64,000 nt of DNA from Macrostomum lignano (GCA_002269645.1 NIVC01000305.1:485845-549844); one strand, 5' to 3'; counted from the first letter of the stretch, positions 51,272-62,872 are shown. Program-made: numbers and translations. The notes: generated from the letters alone by a model not told the origin.

Positions 51272-54200
51272 ATGCATCTCACTAGCGGTATTATAGCCGT
51301 GGCGCCTTTGGTTCACGCTAATGATGAAGGATCGACTGCTGTTGCTCCGTCGCCTTCGCATTATCGCCTTCTGAGCTCTACTAAACTTGCTCAGCCAAAG
51401 AAGAATGTCCTTGATAAAACACCGGAAAAATCTTCTAAGCCTTCGAATTCTACATCAAGTAGCGCCGCTGCGTCAACCGTTATTGAACGTTCTCGACCGA
51501 AGCGTCGTCATAGGCGTTCAAATTCGTTCGATTCGGTGTCTACTTTGAGTCGTCGGTCCTATCTAAACATCGATTTGAGGAGTCGTGCAAAATCGATTGT
51601 GAAATCGTCTGCCCTAGCCAATGCTGTTGGTATAGTTGGTAGGCAGTTGCTAGCGTGGCTGAAATGCGACTGGGAGCAGCAAAGCGTACCGGAAGATCAA
51701 GATGGGTTAGTTGGCCTAATTAAAATGTAGTCTGTTGTTGCTAATGAAGCAAGTCCTACCCAGCAATCAGCATTGCTGTATTACATCTTTTAAAACCTAG
51801 GACAAATCACTAGTTACCTGTGTCCGAATTCAGGATGCCAAATTTAAAACCAGGGTGCCAGAGGTATCTACTGTCTCATCTTAGGTGGTAGCTACTGTCT
51901 CTCAGATGGTAGCTACTGTCTCTTAGATGGTAGCTACATAATCTACTGTCTCTCAGATGGTAGCTACTGTCTCTTAGGTGGCATCTACTGTCTCTCAGAT
52001 GGTATCTACATAATCTACTGTCTCTCAGATGGTAGCTACTGTCTCTTAGGTGGCATCTACACTCTACAGTCTCTCAGATGGTATCTACAGTCTCAGGTGG
52101 TATCTACTGTCTCTCAGGTGGTATCTACTGTTTCTCAGGTGGTATCTACTGTCTCTCAGGTGGTATCTACTGTCTCTCAGGTGGTATCTACAGTCTCTCA
52201 GGTGGTATCTACTGTCTCTCAGGTGGTATCTACTGTCTCTCAGGTGGTATCTACAGTCTCTCAGGTGGTATCTACTGTCTCTTAGGTGGCATCTACACTC
52301 TACAGTCTCTCAGGTGGTATCTACAGTCTCAGGTGGTATCTACTGTCTCAGGTGGTATCTACTGTCTCTCAGGTGGAATCTACTGTCTCTTAGGTGGCAT
52401 CTACACTCTACAGTCTCTCAGGTGGTATCTAAAGTCTCAGGTGGTATCTACTGTCTCTCAGGTGGTATCTACTGTTTCTCAGGTGGTATCTACTGTCTCT
52501 TCAGGTGGTATCTACAGTCTCTCAGGTGGTATCTACAGTCTCTCAGGTGGTATCTACTGTCTCTTAGGTGGCATCTACACTCTACAGTCTCTCAGATGGT
52601 ATCTACAGTCTCAGGTGGTATCTACTGTCTCTCAGGTGGTATCTACTGTTTCTCAGGTGGTATCTACTGTCTCTCAGGTGGTATCTACTGTCTCTCAGGT
52701 GGTATCTACAGTCTCTCAGGTGGTATCTACTGTCTCTCAGGTGGTATCTACTGTCTCTCAGGTGGTATCTACAGTCTCTCAGGTGGTATCTACTGTCTCT
52801 TAGGTGGCATCTACACTCTACAGTCTCTCAGGTGGTATCTACAGTCTCAGGTGGTATCTACTGTCTCAGGTGGTATCTACTGTCTCTCAGGTGGAATCTA
52901 CTGTCTCTTAGGTGGCATCTACACTCTACAGTCTCTCAGGTGGTATCTACAGTCTCAGGTGGTATCTACTGTCTCAGTTGGTATCTACTGTCTCTCAGGT
53001 GGTATCTACTGTCTCTCAGGTGGTATCTACTGTCTCAGGTGGTATCTACTCTCTCAGGTGGTATCTTTTGTCTCAAGTATCAAATCTAGGACCTAGGTTA
53101 CAGGCTAATTAAGATAATGCTCTAATTTCCTTTACTTATCTTAAAATTATAATTCGATTTTATAATCTGTACAAAAATCCAAAGACCTGGGCTTGCTTTT
53201 AATTTACATGCTTAAACAACCTTAAATGAAATCTTAAATTAAATCCCATTAATTGAATATCAACATACTCAATAGTTCACCTGACGCATCTCTTCCCTGC
53301 TGGAAATGCTTCCAGGCGTCGGCAGATCCACAGTCCAGCAGACAGTCTGCTAAGTCGGCCAGGCCAATTAGGCCAAAGCAGAGGCGCTTTCAGAGGCCTA
53401 CTAAGCCCATTGCTAATCCTTCTATCGATGTGCATCGCTCGCTGTCTGTTAGAGTCCCATCTAAGATACGGCCCTCTGGCTGGAAATCCTCTTAGCTGCC
53501 TGGCTGTTGGAGGCGGTCCAGCCTGCATTGCCGGCCTGGTCTGCGTTGCTTTTGCCGCTCTGAATGCGTCTGCTTTTGCCGCTTCTTCTGGCTATCGGAG
53601 GCTCGGAGTGGCCAGCAGTGCCTGTCTGCTTCTGGTGGCTCCCGCTTGCATTGTGCTGTGGTCTAGGCCTTCGCCCAGTGAGTATTTCCTATTATCTTTA
53701 AACTTGGGTTGAGTAGTGTGTTATGAGCAGCCTTGAATACCTTGATTTAAAGCTTTTTTGAAATACTTCTCTGTACCCTTAAAACCCTGGTGTGTTAATG
53801 TACCCCATATAAAACCCAGGTGTGTTAATGCACTCCATAAACTCAGGTGTAATATAACCCTCCGTCTCGCTATTCCCGCTTCAACAGTTGTCGGCTTCGC
53901 AGGAATATCAATCAGTGTGGCTCTGTTCCTCAAGCTGACCAATTTGCACCTGCAGCGTCAGCGCATTGCTAGGCAACTCGTTGAACTTCGGGTTGTCAGT
54001 GTCAACAGAATGCTACTAATTAGCTTTGCTCAACTAGCAGGACTATTAGTTGCTATAGTGGCTCTGACTCAACAGTGGTTAATGCCTTCTCTAGCTGCCG
54101 CCTCATCTGATCCAGCTGCTAATAGCTACGAGTACAATGCGCCCTGCTGGCTGGTGATGGTTGAGAGGCAACTGCGCCTGTCGCCTCCTGTTATTGCCGT

Positions 54201-54862
54201 CTGCTTGGCTGCAGGAGCGGCAATGGATCGGATTCTGAAACTGATGGATTGCTGCTTTCAGTCTGGCAGTGACTTTGTAAGTGCTATTTCTTTATTTTTA
54301 GCTTTTCATTGTTCGTTTCTAAGTTTAGTGTAAGCTTTTAAGATTTTTAGGAATCACCCTTTGAAGTTATTTAGGAATCGCCCTTTGAAGTTATTTAGGA
54401 ATCGTCTTTAAAAGTTGCTTGGGAAATGCCTTTCCATGCCAATCATTGTAACGCAAGAATTCCACAAAAAGAAACATAAGAAATCATTTTTCACCAAAAA
54501 AATATTTTCAGCAGCAGAAACCCTCAGCTGAGGACACTACTATCAGTAGCAAACTAACTCAAACCAAGCGACTCTGGTGGAATGCTTCAAGCCTGACCAA
54601 CCTGCTGAAGTCTGTGTGGCCATCCGCAGCGGAATTCAATCTGCCTAGTCTAGCCTGGGCTCTCCTGGCCCAGCTGGTTGTGTCCGCAGTGCTTCGATCG
54701 CCCCAGCCGTGGCCTCTGCTCACTGTGGCCATCGTGCTGCCCATTCTGGATGCCGCCTGCGTCAGATTCGGCAACAATGCCTTCGTTTGGCTCTGCCTTG
54801 TGCTTGGCCTGCCAGTGCTAGCTAGACTGGGCTATGCTGACTACTGTCAGTACTATCTTTGA
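51272..54862 (+). CDS. Divergent DGAT1-like MBOAT protein, catalytic His replaced by Ala; exons 51272-51705, 53316-53677, 53888-54276, 54512-54862 (511 aa, frame intact)
   Basis: IHSPADSLLS...FRGLL...ARCLLESHLRYG, LFLKL, QQWLMP, ER-LRLSPP, WWNASSLT and GNNAFVWLCLVLGLP parallel DGAT1 motifs in order. All splice phases match (2, 1, 0). Confidence 0.8.
51860..53075. repeat. Intronic minisatellite, 21-bp unit (CTCAGGTGGTATCTACTGTCT) with higher-order blocks
   Basis: DGAT1-like intron 1. Confidence 0.96.
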
Positions 54863-55189
54863 CATTAAACTGACGTTTTCTGTGTAGATATTTGCAACGA
54901 TTGACATTATATTAGCAATATAATTTTCTGTTGTTAACTCTTTAATTTTTGTTGATTAAAATTCTATAAATAAACAATTCTGTTGGGGGCAATAAACATT
55001 TATTTTGTTTTCCTATCCATATAGACTTTCTGTATACTTTTTTGTACTATTATTATGTCTTGGATTCTAAAATGAAAGTCCATGTTAGATTTCAGGAGAG
55101 AATAGATTTGAGGGAGATTGAGTGAGTCTAGAGATGACTGTGATTAGGGAAGGTAATAGAAATGAATTGAGACTGAGTTGGAGATTAGA

Positions 55190-56620
55190 AATGGCTGGGA
55201 TTCTGAGAGAATTGAGATTAATTAAGATTAAAAGCTAGAGATGGCTGTGATTGGGGGAGAGAACAGAGTTAAATAAGATTAAAGGGGATTAGAGATGGCT
55301 GTGATTGGGGGAGAGAACAGAGTTAAATAAGATTAAAGGGGATTAGAGATGGCTGGGATTGGGGTAGAACAGAGATAAATGAGATTAAAGGGGATTAGAG
55401 ATGGCTGGGATTGGGGTAGAACAGAGATAAATGAGATTAAAGGGGATTAGAGATGGCTGGGATTGGGGTAGAACAGAGATAAATGAGATTAAAGGGGATT
55501 AGAGATGGCTGGGATTGGGGTAGAACAGAGATAAATGAGATTAAAGGGGATTAGAGATGGCTGGGATTGGGGTAGAACAGAGATAAATGAGATTAAGGGG
55601 GATTAGAGATGGCTGTGATTGGGGTAGAGAACAGAGATAAATGAGATTAAAGGGGATTAGAGGTGGCTGTGATTGGGGGAGAGAACAGAGATAAATGAGA
55701 TTAGAGATGGCTGTGATTGGGGGAGAGAACAGAGATAAATGAGATTAAAGGGGATTAGAGATGGCTGTGGTTGGGGTAGAGAACAGAGATAAATGAGATT
55801 AAAGGGGATTAGAGATGGCTGGGATTGGGGTAGAGAACATAGCTAAATGAGATTAAAGGGGATTAGAGATGGCTGTGATTGGGGTAGAGAACAGAGATAA
55901 ATGAGATTAAAGGGGATTAGAGATGGCTGGGATTGGGGTAGAGAACAGAGATAAATGAGATTAAAGGGGATTAGAGATGGCTGTGATTGGGGTAGAGAAC
56001 AGAGATAAATGAGATTAAAGGGGATTAGAGATGGCTGTGGTTGGGGTAGAGAACAGAGATAAATGAGATTAAAGGGGATTAGAGATGGCTGTGGTTGGGG
56101 TAGAGAACAGAGATAAATGAGATTGAGGGGGATTAGAGATGGCTGTGATTGGGGTAGAGAACAGAGATAAATGAGATTAAAGGGGATTAGAGATGGCTGT
56201 GGTTGGGGTAGAGAACAGAGATAAATGAGATTAAAGGGGATTAGAGGTGGCTGTGATTGGGGGAGAGAACAGAGATAAATGAGATTAGAGATGGCTGTGA
56301 TTGGGGGAGAGAACAGAGATAAATGGGATTGAGGGGGATTAGAGATGGCTGTGATTGGGGCAGAGAACAGAGATAAATGGGATTGAGGGGGATTAGAGAT
56401 GGCTGTGATTGGGGGAGAGAACAGAGATATATGAGATTGAGGGGGATTAGAGATGGCTGTGGTTGGGGAGAGAACAGAGATAAATGGGATTGAGGGGGAT
56501 TAGAGATGGCTGTGATTGGGGCAGAGAACAGAGATAAATGGGATTGAGGGGATTAGAGATGGCTGTGATTGGGGGAGAGAACAGATAAATGAGATTAAGG
56601 GGGTTTAGAGATGGCAGGGA
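55190..56620. repeat. Purine-rich minisatellite, ~54-bp unit (GAGATTAAAGGGGATTAGAGATGGCTGTGATTGGGGTAGAGAACAGAGATAAAT)
   Basis: About 26 copies between the DGAT1-like gene and SIRT6. Confidence 0.96.
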
Positions 56621-56699
56621 TTTTTTAGAGAGAATAGAGATGATTAGGGTCCATAACGTTATAGAAAAACAGTCGGTACGGCAACACACCAACAGCTCA

Positions 56700-56720
56700 T
56701 CTCCTTCCTCCCACCTCCAG
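56700..56720 (+). promoter_or_regulatory. 3' splice acceptor, probable spliced-leader trans-splice site supplying the SIRT6 start codon
   Basis: Pyrimidine tract CTCCTTCCTCCCACCTCCAG directly followed by TCG GCT AAC TAC (S-A-N-Y), i.e. SIRT6 residue 2 onward. Confidence 0.7.
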
Positions 56721-58091
56721 TCGGCTAACTACTCGGCCGGGCTGTCCGAATACTCGGACAAAGGCACTCTGGGCCTGCCCGAAACTCACGAGTCCCAAGC
56801 CGATTGGGAGTTGAAAGCTCGTCAGCTGGTGGACCTGATTCGACAGCCCGGAGCTCGAGTCGTTGTCCACACGGGAGCCGGCGTCAGCACCTCGGCCGGA
56901 ATCCCGGATTTCCGCGGCCCCAACGGCGTCTGGACTCTAGAACGCGAAGGTCGAACAGTTGAAGCCGGGGCCAAGTTTGAAGAGGCTCAGCCAACACTTA
57001 CTCACGCCGCTCTGGTTGCCTTGGAAACGGCCGGATTCGTTCACTACCTGGTGACGCAGAATGTTGACGGTTTGCACCTTCGGTCTGGATTTCCTCGCAA
57101 TCGGTTGTCGATTTTGCATGGCGATATGTTTGTTGAGCGGTGCGCCCGGTGCGGCTTGCACCGGGCGAGAGACCAACCGGTGGAGACGGTCGGTCAGAAA
57201 GCCACCGGGAGGCGGTGCGGAGCTCCGGCTAGGCGAGGCAGAAAGAAATCCGTCAAAGCCGGTGGCGATGCTGGTGACAGTGTTGACGGCATCTGCGGCG
57301 GCCAGATGCTGGACACGGTGCTAGACTGGGAGCATCAGCTGCCTCAGGTAGATCTTCGTCGAGCTCGCGAGCATTCCAGTCGGGCTACCGTTAATCTGAC
57401 TCTGGGCACCAGTTTGCAGATTGTTCCGGCCGCCGATCTGCCCACAATGGGCGGCAAATTAGTCATTATTAATCTGCAGCCTACAAAGAAAGATGCTCAG
57501 AGTTATCTGCGTATAAATGCTCGTTGCGATCTTGTCATGGCGTTGGTCTGTAGAGAACTGCTCGGCATTGATGCCGAAGAGATGCTGAGGCCGTTGCTTC
57601 GCCTGCAACCGTTGAGACTGTTTTCTAAGCATACGCGAAAGAGTGAACGGTTTCCATGGCGATTCGCCGAGTCTGATCAGAATCAAAAAATCGATAGAGA
57701 AGCTCAAAAAGAAGCTAAATGCGAGATTCCAAGTACAGAACGCACTTTGGAAAGTTCAAAATGCACTTCGGAAAGTGCACATTGTACTTCGAAAAGTACA
57801 GAACGCACTTTGGAACGCATTTCTGAAAGTACAGAACGCACTTTGGAAAGTTCAAAATGCACTTCGGAAAGTGCACATTGTACTTCGGAAAGTACAGAGC
57901 GCACTTTGGAACGCATTTCTGAAAGTACAGAGCGCACTTTGGAAAGTGCTCAACGCACCTCGTCGGAGAGTTCAAATCAAAGTATCAAAATCAAAGATGA
58001 AGTTGTCACCGATATGAAAAAGAAACTTGAACATTCGAGCGCAGATGAGTCTAACTCTGCCACCGCGACTAAACGTTCAAAGCTTGCTTAG
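56721..58091 (+). CDS. SIRT6: NAD-dependent deacylase sirtuin-6, single exon, with repetitive C-terminal tail
   Basis: SANYSAGLSEYSDKGTLGLPE, HTGAGVSTSAGIPDFRGPNGVWT, TQNVDGLH, LHGDMF, LDTVLDWE, LGTSLQI, INLQPTKKD. Confidence 0.95.
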   Translation, partial: SANYSAGLSEYSDKGTLGLPETHESQADWELKARQLVDLIRQPGARVVVHTGAGVSTSAGIPDFRGPNGVWTLEREGRTVEAGAKFEEAQPTLTHAALVALETAGFVHYLVTQNVDGLHLRSGFPRNRLSILHGDMFVERCARCGLHRARDQPVETVGQKATGRRCGAPARRGRKKSVKAGGDAGDSVDGICGGQMLDTVLDWEHQLPQVDLRRAREHSSRATVNLTLGTSLQIVPAADLPTMGGKLVIINLQPTKKDAQSYLRINARCDLVMALVCRELLGIDAEEMLRPLLRLQPLRLFSKHTRKSERFPWRFAESDQNQKIDREAQKEAKCEIPSTERTLESSKCTSESAHCTSKSTERTLERISESTERTLESSKCTSESAHCTSESTERTLERISESTERTLESAQRTSSESSNQSIKIKDEVVTDMKKKLEHSSADESNSATATKRSKLA

Positions 58092-58619: not shown

Positions 58620-60760
58620 TACTAATATAGATACATCACATCATCTAGATACAATACAACACTACGCCATAGATACAGCATCACCATCTAGATACAATAC
58701 AACACTACGCCATAGATACAGCATCACCATCTAGATACAACACAACACTACGCCATAGATATAGCATCACCATCTAGATACAATACCACACTACGCCATA
58801 GATACAGCATCACCATCTAGATACAACACCACGCCATAGATACAGCATCACCATCTAGATACAATATAACATTACGCCATAGATACAGCATCACCATCTA
58901 GATACAATATAACACTACGCCATAGATACAGCATCACCATCTAGATACAATATAACACTACGCCATAGATACAGCATCACCATCTAGATACAACACCACG
59001 CCATAGATACAGCATCACCATCTAGATACAATATAACACCACGCCATAGATACAGCATCACCATCTAGATACAACACCACGCCATAGATACAGCATCACC
59101 ATCTAGATACAATATAACACCACGCCATAGATACAGCATCACCATCTAGATACAACACAACACTACGCCATAGATATAGCATCACCATCTAGATACAATA
59201 CCACACTACGCCATAGATACAGCATCACCATCTAGATACAACACCACGCCATAGATACAGCATCACCATCTAGATACAATATAACACTACGCCATAGATA
59301 CAGCATCACCATCTAGATACAATACAACACTACGCCATAGATACAGCATCACCATCTAGATACAACACAACACTACGCCATAGATACAGCATCACCATCT
59401 AGATACAATACCACACTACGCCATAGATACAGCATCACCATCTAGATACAACACCACGCCATAGATACAGCATCACCATCTAGATACAATATAACACTAC
59501 GCCATAGATACAGCATCACCATCTAGATACAATATAACACTACGCCATAGATACAGCATCACCATCTAGATACAATACAACACTACGCCATAGATACAGC
59601 ATCACCATCTAGATACAATATAACACTACGCCATAGATACAGCATCACCATCTAGATACAACACCACGCCATAAATACAGCATCACCATCTAGATACAAT
59701 ATAACACTACGCCATAGATACAGCATCACCATCTAGATACAATACAACACTACGCCATAGATACAGCATCACCATCTAGATACAATATAACACTACGCCA
59801 TAGATACAGCATCACCATCTAGATACAATACAACACTACGCCATAGATACAGCATCATCATCTAGATACAATATAACACTACGCCATAGATACAGCATCA
59901 CCATCTAGATACAACACCACGCCATAGATACAGCATCACCATCTAGATACAACACCACGCCATAGATACAGCATCACCATCTAGATACAATACAACACCA
60001 CGCCATAGATACAGCATCACCATCTAGATACAACACCACGCCATAGATACAGCATCACCATCTAGATACAACACCACGCCATAGATACAGCATCACCATC
60101 TAGATACAATATAACACTACGCCATAGATACAGCATCACCATCTAGATACAACACCACGCCATAGATACAGCATCACCATCTAGATACAATATAACACTA
60201 CGCCATAGATACAGCATCACCATCTAGATACAATACAACACTACGCCATAGATACAGCATCACCATCTAGATACAATATAACACTACGCCATAGATACAG
60301 CATCACCATCTAGATACAATACAACACTACGCCATAGATACAGCATCATCATCTAGATACAATATAACACTACGCCATAGATACAGCATCACCATCTAGA
60401 TACAACACCACGCCATAGATACAGCATCACCATCTAGATACAACACCACGCCATAGATACAGCATCACCATCTAGATACAATACAACACCACGCCATAGA
60501 TACAGCATCACCATCTAGATACAACACCACGCCATAGATACAGCATCACCATCTAGATACAATATAACACTACGCCATAGATACAGCATCACCATCTAAA
60601 TACAATACCACACCATAGATACAGCATCACCATCTAGATACAACACCACACCATAGATACAGCATCACCATCTAGATACAACACCACACTACGCCATAGA
60701 TACAGCATCACCATCTAGATACAACACCACGCCATAAATACACCACCACCCCATAGATGC
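58620..60760. repeat. Minisatellite, 38/43-bp variant units (GCCATAGATACAGCATCACCATCTAGATACAA[TATA]ACAC[T/C]AC)
   Basis: About 50 copies with a constant core and a few recurring tail variants. Confidence 0.97.
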
Positions 60761-60932: not shown

Positions 60933-62872
60933 ATGGCATCCCCAGTCAAGAGCAGCAGCATGCTGCAGTCCATGAAGTCGCTCGGTACTAAAGCCGCAGC
61001 CGCAGCTCTTGACTGGCTAGGCTCAAACGAAGCAACCAATATTCTCAACGATTCCACGGCATCCATGGAATTCGAACTTCGCCTTGCCGAACGAGTGCTT
61101 GCCTCGATTGATTGGTCTAACTATGCTGCCAGAAGTGCCACCGTCTGGACAAAGCATCAGCGTCCGTTGCCTAGCGACGCCAAGAGTCCAGCTCGCCTAG
61201 CGGAAGCTCGTTCGGCCGGTCTGGAAGCCCTCGACTGCGGCCTGCTGCGTTTAGCGGCGCTGCGATTTTCTGAATGCATCCGGCACGCCCAGCCAGGTAG
61301 CTCGGATCTTGCCGTGGCTTTCGCCAACCGTTCGCTGGTGTTCAAACGTCTCGGTTGCTATGCGGAAGCCATAGCCGATGCTGAAGCGGCTCTACGGTTG
61401 CCGTATGGCGACGAGCGGGCCGGTAAGCTGACAGGTCGCATCGCTGACTGTCAGAAGAGAATGTCAGTGTCGAAATCCTCAAGTGTTTCCCAGCCAGCAG
61501 CAGCATCTCAATCGTTGTTGCGGGATTTTAATCCCCAGCTGCCGCACGCCAGCGCCAAGGTGCAGCTCGCTCTGGCAGACGAAAGTCGCGGTCGCTGTCT
61601 TCTTACTCTTGAAGACGTCGATGTTGGAGACCTGTTGGTCTCTGAGCCGGCTTTTAGCGCCATTCTGCTGTCAAATCTTCGCGATAGTCACTGCTCAGCC
61701 TGCTTGGCACCTTGCCAACGGTTGCTGCCCTGTAGCGACTGCTCAGTTGTTGGCTTCTGCTCGGAGACTTGTCGGGATAACGACCCGGTCCACAGGGTGG
61801 AATGCGGATGGCTGGCTGGATGGCTGGACTCGGCATTCAATGCGAGCATTGGTCGGCTCGCTTTGCCACCGTGATCGCCGCTGGCGGTCCGGTTTCCGTT
61901 GCTCAGGCTGTTGCTAAGGCGAAGAATTTCAAAGATTTCGAATCGGTTTCGGATCTGCTGGCGATTATCAATCGGTGCTGGCTTTGGTAGCTGGAGAACG
62001 ACAGCGAGAGAGTCGCGATTTGGCTCAGCGAGTCGCCGTTGCCTGCCAGATGGCTCTGCTGCTCAGTGTTGAGTCTGAGTCAAATTCTCAGCTAGATGTA
62101 GCCGCCCCACTTGTTGCAGCACTGCTGCGCCATCTGATGCTGGTGCCGTGCAATGCTCACGATGTAACTGCATTGTCCGCTCCGCCGAGTAGGCTGACTA
62201 CTAGTAGTAGTACTGACAATGGCAGTTCGTAGATATTTCTGCCTGACTATCAGAGACATTGGGTCGGCTGTGTATCCTACGGCCAGTTTAATTAATCATT
62301 CTTGCGATCCGAATGTATCGCGAGTCACTTGTCCCGGTTTGAGACTGGAGATTCGAGCTCTCCGACCGATTGCTAAAGGCGAGGAGCTCCTTGACAACTA
62401 CGGTTGGCATTGGGCTGTGCATCCGAAACAGCAGCGCCAAGAAAGTCTTGCAGCTCAGTATTTGTTCGACTGCGACTGTGTTGCTTGCACCAATGAGTGG
62501 CCACTGTATGATGGCTTGTTGGCGTTGGAGCCTAGATGGATTGATGCGATTGCTAAGGACGATAAGAGCGAAGTCGAGGGTGCCGATAAAAACAATTTAG
62601 ACGATGTTGCCAATTTTGTTGTCGATCCAACAATCAAAGCCGAGGTGGAATCAACTGTCGGGGTTGTAGCCGAGTTCGTGTCCTCATTCTCCACTTCCGC
62701 GCCACTCTTAGCTAACGAGCTGAACTCGCGTTTCGAGGCCCGACTGTTGTCGCTAATCCGCCTGCTGCAGCGTCGTGTCAGACGGCCGCATCGGTGGTTT
62801 AACGACGCCGAAGAGTGCGTCAAGATGGTGTGGAGCGCGCGGGGCTGCTTGGACACCGGCGGGACTGACTGA
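60933..62872 (+). CDS. SMYD4: SET and MYND domain protein (SMYD4-like): TPR, split SET, MYND; three frame breaks as assembled (~61865, ~61958, ~62230)
   Basis: TPR LAVAFANRSLV; SRGRCLL...VGDLLVSEP; CSACLAPC...PCSDC...FCSETCR...HRVEC; CNAH; GSAVYPTASLINHSCDPNV; ELLDNYG; YLFDCDCVAC. Confidence 0.82.

Follow-up and report, generated by a model that had tools for sequence, protein, structure and literature searches.

The DNA analysed here, a stretch of 64 kb (64,000 nucleotides; the window), matches contig NIVC01000305.1 of the Macrostomum lignano assembly Mlig_3_7 (GCA_002269645.1) exactly and reaches the contig end. Window position 56721 corresponds to position 542565 of this contig. M. lignano is a free-living flatworm that serves as a model for ageing and regeneration. 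Its genome has been described as a recent polyploid with redundant copies (PMC8629364).

All genes found in the window lie on the + strand. The locus under study holds an intronless SIRT6 gene, preceded by a gene that we call g362 and followed by a SET-domain gene (Table 1). From the stop codon of g362 at 54862, which is followed by AATAAA signals at about 54970-54995, a spacer of 1858 nt leads to the candidate splice acceptor of SIRT6. The 54-bp satellite in this spacer is presumptively the outron or upstream region of SIRT6. The intergenic spacers flanking SIRT6 are filled by three different satellites (52013-53074, 55236-56622 and 58627-59998), with units of 21 bp, 54 bp and 43 bp. An Rfam scan of the whole window gave no match, and no SL (spliced leader) RNA gene was found in the window.

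Table 1. Features of the SIRT6 locus. Coordinates are those of the window unless a copy of the locus (L number) is named.
Feature	Coordinates	Strand	Remarks
Upstream gene g362, 362 aa	53326-54862; copies L004:6565, L008:3716
54-bp satellite, about 26 copies	55236-56622	.	TRF; 49 ATG triplets; upstream of the acceptor
In-frame ATG no. 1	56589-56591	+	Rejected start; within the degenerate final satellite unit; extension would be 44 non-homologous residues
In-frame ATG no. 2	56640-56642	+	Rejected as main start; 18 nt beyond the array; would add 27 non-homologous residues
Second in-frame CAG, aaaaacag/TCGGTAC	56670-56672	+	Weak candidate acceptor; no pyrimidine tract; would add 16 residues
Polypyrimidine tract, 22 nt, ctcatctccttcctcccacctc	56696-56717	+	3' splice site
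CTCCAG, candidate trans-splice acceptor	56715-56720	+	Fits [T/C]TNCAG; CAG at 56718-56720, AG ends at 56720
SIRT6 coding sequence, single exon, without initiator ATG	56721-58091	+	456 genomic codons + TAG
First in-frame genomic ATG, codon 136 (HGDMFVE)	57126-57128	+	Start there removes the Rossmann NAD-binding motif
96-bp tandem repeat, 2.3 copies	57731-57947	+	TRF; in the non-conserved C-terminal tail of SIRT6
SET-domain gene	About 60933-62870; L004:14213-16156; also L005:12857, L008:10001

The SIRT6 open reading frame (ORF) runs uninterrupted from 56721 to a TAG at 58089-58091. Its codons from 56721 are TCG GCT AAC TAC TCG GCC GGG CTG TCC GAA TAC TCG GAC AAA GGC, and the translation begins SANYSAGLSEYSDKG (SANYSAGLSEY). 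The product contains a Sir2 domain (Pfam PF02146, E = 1e-20). The NAD-binding GAGxS...GIPDFR motif and the catalytic HG are present; the corresponding segments, GAGVSTSAGIPDFRGPNGVW and LHGDMFVE, align to human SIRT6, as do the catalytic and zinc-binding residues. When the ORF was compared with PDB structures by phmmer, human SIRT6 was matched with E = 8e-79 and SIRT7 with E = 6e-43. The best relatives are animal SIRT6 proteins, with ~50% identity over the catalytic domain, and among the 120 database matches listed every named one is SIRT6, the rest being unnamed or called 'hypothetical protein'. By its sequence, the gene is the M. lignano orthologue of SIRT6, a class IV sirtuin.

The 96-bp coding repeat in the SIRT6 tail (STERTLE.SKCTSESAHCTS...) differs in copy number among the genome copies. 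The label SIRT6 is carried by a different gene family in the ageing study of Mouton et al. 2018 (PMC5946080). There the 'SIRT6' qPCR target is genes Mlig005493.g1-g3 (supplementary file 6), and the 'SIRT6' qPCR primers gave no match to the 56721-58091 locus or its copies.

The extreme N-terminus of SIRT6 is conserved as M-S-x-N-Y-A-x-G-L-S, and the M. lignano ORF matches it from residue 2. In the phmmer alignment to PDB, residue 2 of human SIRT6 pairs with the Ser at 56721, and SANYSAGLS corresponds to residues 2-10. In 111 of 119 retrieved SIRT6 orthologues, S-x-N-Y follows Met1 directly. Seven of the remaining eight, which look over-extended, also have a Met directly before S-x-N-Y; the last is an N-terminally truncated model without the motif. 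Because orthologue N-termini place Met directly before S-x-N-Y, the position of Met1 is well defined. In M. lignano the codon at this position is CAG, and the Met is not genome-encoded. Initiation at the next in-frame ATG downstream (57126) would lose the NAD-binding motif GAGVSTSAGIPDFRG. A sequence-only reading of the window had put the end of the pyrimidine tract and CAG at 56720, started the SIRT6 codons at 56721, aligned them from residue 2 and noted that Met1 has no ATG. All of its coordinates proved correct, and so did the alignment and the missing ATG.

The stretch 56660-56760 reads ...ggcaacacaccaacag ctcatctccttcctcccacctc cag, followed by TCG GCT. The M. lignano SL has been given as the 35-nt sequence CGGTCTCTTACTGCGAAGACTCAATTTATTGCATG, which ends in ATG (PMC8629364); its 3' part reads ...TTATTGCATG or, in another excerpt, ...CAATTTATTGCATG. 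The motif described as most enriched at M. lignano trans-splice junctions is [T/C]TNCAG (PMC8629364). Within 56301-56900 this motif occurs once, exactly at 56715-56720, where pyrimidines make up 17 of the 20 nt before CTCCAG. In the whole 64-kb window, the motif preceded by 20 nt with at least 80% pyrimidines is found at three sites on the + strand. The strongest acceptor-like site of the region falls exactly at the boundary between codons 1 and 2 of SIRT6.

If the SL were joined at the CTCCAG acceptor ending at 56720, the AUG at the end of its 35 nt would be placed in frame directly before Ser-Ala-Asn-Tyr. The modelled junction is ...TTGCATG/TCGGCTAAC, and the modelled mRNA reads ...UUGC AUG UCG GCU AAC, which gives M-S-A-N in frame. 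In this model the SL AUG is the sole AUG in the first 375 nt, and the next in-frame AUG is that at 57126. Since the SL AUG would be in frame, the mature mRNA would have a 32-nt SL-derived 5'UTR and encode the canonical N-terminus MSANYSAGLSEY in a protein of 457 aa. The predicted N-terminal peptide is (Ac-)SANYSAGLSEYSDK or MSANY.... Trans-splicing would also discard the SIRT6 outron, including the satellite sequence with its many ATGs. Its removal is plausibly useful, because a leader that included the satellite would contain 49 ATGs. According to Wiberg et al., the final ATG of the Macrostomum SL probably serves as the translation start codon (PMC10468722). We consider it very likely that SIRT6 pre-mRNA is SL trans-spliced at the acceptor ending at 56720 and that the SL AUG supplies Met1.

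The deposited SIRT6 protein has 456 aa, begins with S and is present on three contigs of GCA_002269645.1. Its model is a 5'-partial CDS that starts exactly at 56721 in three genome copies, with no upstream exon in any of them. GenBank lists the product merely as a 'partial' hypothetical protein, and neighbouring genes have products called 'hypothetical protein BOX15_Mlig..., partial [Macrostomum lignano]'. Neither M+ORF nor the forms beginning at ATG 56589 or 56640 were found in the protein collection by exact look-up.

In the annotation of Mlig_3_7, as outlined in PMC5730564, those RNA-seq reads that contain the SL were extracted, trimmed and mapped. Transcriptional units were then cut at SL-read peaks (TBONE), after which ORFs were called by TransDecoder. 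Because the ORF call starts at the first base after the CAG, the transcript model probably begins at 56721. A model reaching farther upstream would have taken in the open frame as far back as ATG 56589. The deposited start speaks indirectly, and specifically, against the refuting scenario named in the sequence-only reading, in which transcripts run unspliced into the ORF from ATG 56589 or 56640. From this published method, rather than from a read track, we infer an SL-read peak at 56721; SL-containing reads would define this position, and ribosomes would start at the SL AUG. An SL-supplied start is already implied by the 5'-partial model in the public record. As a caveat, the 5' ends of neighbouring deposited models wobble somewhat and do not in every case coincide with an AG. 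When the N-terminal 124 residues, upstream extension included, were used in a protein search, no M. lignano transcript-derived fragment was returned, and the SL/exon junction was not found in a scan of metagenome contigs.

Three copies of the locus (L001-L003) are a single substitution apart in the 130 nt upstream, and because they are nearly identical there they are uninformative on conservation. The whole locus is present a fourth time, in more divergent form (L008), on NIVC01001474.1, with SIRT6 at L008:7700-9174. The CTCCAG acceptor is identical in 4/4 genome copies, and the CAG at the Met position is likewise found in all four. L008 lacks a deposited SIRT6 model though the sequence is present and the ORF intact (435 codons, without one 21-codon repeat block of the C-terminal tail). 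Because no model is deposited there, this copy may be poorly or not expressed. Between L008 and the window copy, 14 codons differ synonymously and 12 non-synonymously overall; in the catalytic domain, where dN/dS is roughly 0.2, the numbers are 9 and 6. L008 SIRT6 also carries a P>S change within the conserved NLQPTK motif.

The main alternative is that translation starts at genomic ATG 56640 or 56589 without trans-splicing, so that a protein with the 27- or 44-residue extension is the main or a substantial isoform. The frame of the SIRT6 ORF is indeed open from a stop at 56586-56588 through both ATGs, and both ATGs are found in all copies, L008 included. In the three near-identical copies the frame is open from either ATG, so a minor unspliced isoform might exist. 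However, 44 open codons in a row are unremarkable by chance (about 0.12). The extension, which joined to the ORF would read ...SSPSSHLQSANY or ...HLQSANYSAGLSEYSDK, has no homology to any SIRT6, whose N-termini are nearly always M-S-x-N-Y; none of the 44 upstream codons aligns to human SIRT6 (phmmer against PDB). A leader running through the satellite would bear up to 49 upstream ATGs, and, as set out above, the deposited ORF would reach 56589 if the transcript model ran upstream.

The divergent copy bears most directly on the upstream frame. In L008 three inserted nucleotides (ATT) give rise to a TAG in this frame (L008:7816-7818), which precedes the acceptor by 16 codons, and no ATG lies between this TAG and SANY. 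Because the TAG separates them from the ORF, the upstream ATGs of L008 cannot serve SIRT6. The upstream frame behaves as non-coding, since the TAG interrupts it, whereas acceptor and ORF stay conserved. We regard a start at either upstream ATG as quite unlikely.

Cis-splicing could also join an upstream 5' exon, one that ends in ATG or contributes a short stretch of coding sequence, to the acceptor at 56720. The acceptor alone cannot tell cis- from trans-splicing, and parasitic flatworms use common acceptors for both (PMC12582326). However, no ATG/GT donor is present in the entire 1858-nt spacer back to the upstream gene, and the sole GT[AG]AG donor in it, at 55122, lies within satellite-like sequence. 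These two results argue against a cis-spliced ATG exon, as do the deposited models, which have no upstream exon in any copy, and such an exon is very improbable. The sequence-only reading had likewise seen no ATG/GT donor exon upstream. It had also placed the in-frame ATGs 56589 and 56640 in or beside the satellite, as they are (the first inside the last unit, the second 18 nt past the array), and had expected from them a non-homologous extension, in agreement with the alignment of 0/44 codons.

A further variant keeps trans-splicing and moves the junction. SL addition at 56672/56673 would give M+SVRQHTNSSSPSSHLQ+SANY..., in frame after aaacag/TCGGTAC, and CAGTCGG is common to this and the main site. 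The sequence before it, atagaaaaacag, however, has no pyrimidine tract, and the 16 added residues have no homologue. Deposited ORFs begin at 56721, though TransDecoder extends 5'-partial ORFs to the transcript end. We give this site a very low probability.

It is just as hard to credit that the locus is a pseudogene, a non-functional or untranslated copy in which the missing ATG reflects decay. Redundant copies are expected in a recent polyploid genome as described for M. lignano (PMC8629364), and the adjacent SET copy in the window is frameshifted. However, the SIRT6 ORF is intact in four copies, and its catalytic and zinc-binding residues align to human SIRT6. Synonymous changes exceed non-synonymous changes per site between the divergent copies (rough dN/dS ~0.2 in the catalytic domain), and CAG at the Met position is conserved with the acceptor in 4/4 copies. 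A retrogene, that is an intronless copy of an SL-bearing mRNA, was also considered and rejected; no SL-like sequence was found before the ORF.

The proposal that Met1 comes from the SL AUG, already made in the sequence-only reading together with the statement that flatworm SLs end in AUG, is supported on several sides. The M. lignano SL does end in ATG in the published description (PMC8629364), and the acceptor motif, the deposited start, the TAG in L008 and the position of the downstream ATG all favour an SL-supplied Met1.

Neighbouring genes were compared with SIRT6. In sister copies of the locus, a phosphomevalonate kinase gene lies two genes downstream (L004:19630-19700; L008:15059), and its genomic ATG is absent. 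Its model starts after ctgcag/TCG GCC, which gives (M)SASNCSLKPRQLLLISGKRKSGKD (SASNC...); residue 9 of the human phosphomevalonate kinase chain 3ch4_B is matched by residue 8 of this product. The architecture is the same as the SL-AUG arrangement proposed for SIRT6, which makes this gene a second example within a few kilobases. The phosphomevalonate kinase and SET genes have a common transcriptional-unit prefix (Mlig002561g4/g5; Mlig029511g3/g4), and this one prefix suggests a polycistronic precursor resolved by the SL.

In the SET-domain model (PAA52720.1 and others; 646 aa, labelled 'partial'), the first base directly follows a genomic ATG (caaATG/GCATCC). Candidate acceptors acag and gccag lie 7 and 24 nt before this base, and the omitted Met may be an SL-trimming artefact of annotation. 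The copy of this gene in the window has two frameshifts near 61810-62243 and is without a gene model.

The product of g362 has no Pfam match; in UniRef, a related entry bears the name GPI ethanolamine phosphate transferase 3. Its model starts at cag/ATC, cag ATC/CAC or ccagCA/GAC depending on the copy, 3 and 15 nt apart and involving two adjacent AGs. The SL AUG would be in frame from one of the adjacent acceptors and out of frame from the other. Farther upstream, the EF-hand gene at window 45311 has a normal genomic ATG start. A pyrimidine-rich cag at window 36579 has, 8 codons further on, what looks like an N-terminus of PRELI/MSF1 type; this gene would be one that keeps a genomic ATG shortly after an acceptor.

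Near the locus, a genomic ATG is clearly missing from SIRT6 and phosphomevalonate kinase, and an acceptor directly precedes the start of the g362 model. That conserved trans-spliced M. lignano genes as a rule take their start codon from the SL is a tentative idea, and we think it rather doubtful. If it were true, a large set of housekeeping and stem-cell genes, the longevity-associated SIRT6 among them, would be translated strictly in dependence on trans-splicing, which could then be a global control point, for example in neoblasts. In neoblasts, 85% of genes have been reported as trans-spliced.

For SIRT6 itself, replacement of the lost initiator by the SL AUG would make functional expression obligatorily coupled to trans-splicing. 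Gene finders that require an ATG would truncate the protein at Met136 or extend it into satellite-derived sequence. For cloning, expression, tagging or knock-in of M. lignano SIRT6, an ATG has to be added, and the upstream ATGs should not be taken as the start.

SIRT6 of M. lignano is an ordinary case of a flatworm mechanism established since 2006, with a sirtuin precedent in SmSirt7. Every reported flatworm SL ends in ATG (PMC12582326). Use of the Schistosoma SL AUG as initiator was described by Cheng, Cohen, Ndegwa & Davis 2006 (J Biol Chem 281:733), as cited in PMC9851317 and PMC12582326. According to PMC9851317, that study found that 28% of trans-spliced S. mansoni mRNAs have the SL AUG in frame and that more than 40 cDNAs require it. 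The M. lignano gene resembles these S. mansoni genes in that the SL ends in AUG, the acceptor abuts codon 2, the genomic ATG is absent, and the SL AUG would be in frame and needed for the full-length protein. They differ in that S. mansoni is a parasitic trematode with experimental evidence, whereas M. lignano is a free-living macrostomorph whose case is read from sequence. It would add one more clean example, from an early-branching free-living flatworm, of an SL AUG that can substitute for a lost genomic initiator.

The sirtuin precedent is SmSirt7, whose initiating ATG was shown by full-length cDNA to come from the SL (Lancelot et al. 2013, PMC3772001). Like M. lignano SIRT6, it is a flatworm class IV sirtuin with an SL-supplied start codon. 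However, SmSirt7 is the paralogue Sirt7 and documented by cDNA, whereas the M. lignano SIRT6 start is deduced. SmSirt6 was cloned by RACE in the same work, with the SL unmentioned (PMC3772001).

Within M. lignano, 45% of genes with a human homologue are given as trans-spliced (PMC5730564; PMC8629364). SIRT6 resembles the trans-spliced genes of Mlig_3_7 in having the same SL and the same [T/C]TNCAG motif, and in a model that begins at the acceptor. In the passages searched, Wudarski et al. 2017 (PMC5730564) and Ustyantsev & Berezikov 2021 (PMC8629364) discuss neither a role of the SL AUG as start codon nor SIRT6 specifically.

The Echinococcus granulosus orthologue (P0089; locus L007) has the same N-terminal motif, MSLDYASALSEYENKG. 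Its own genomic ATG is retained, 4 nt after a ttccag, and introns are present. Because E. granulosus SIRT6 keeps its ATG, loss of the genomic ATG is lineage-specific and took place within flatworms, not in all of them. The slORFs reported with slORFfinder (PMC9851317) are like SIRT6 in that the leader gives the start codon in trans. In nematodes, Oikopleura and trypanosomes, slORFfinder is aimed mostly at non-canonical NUG starts and novel ORFs. In contrast, the canonical AUG proposed for M. lignano SIRT6 would restore the ancestral N-terminus of a conserved protein.
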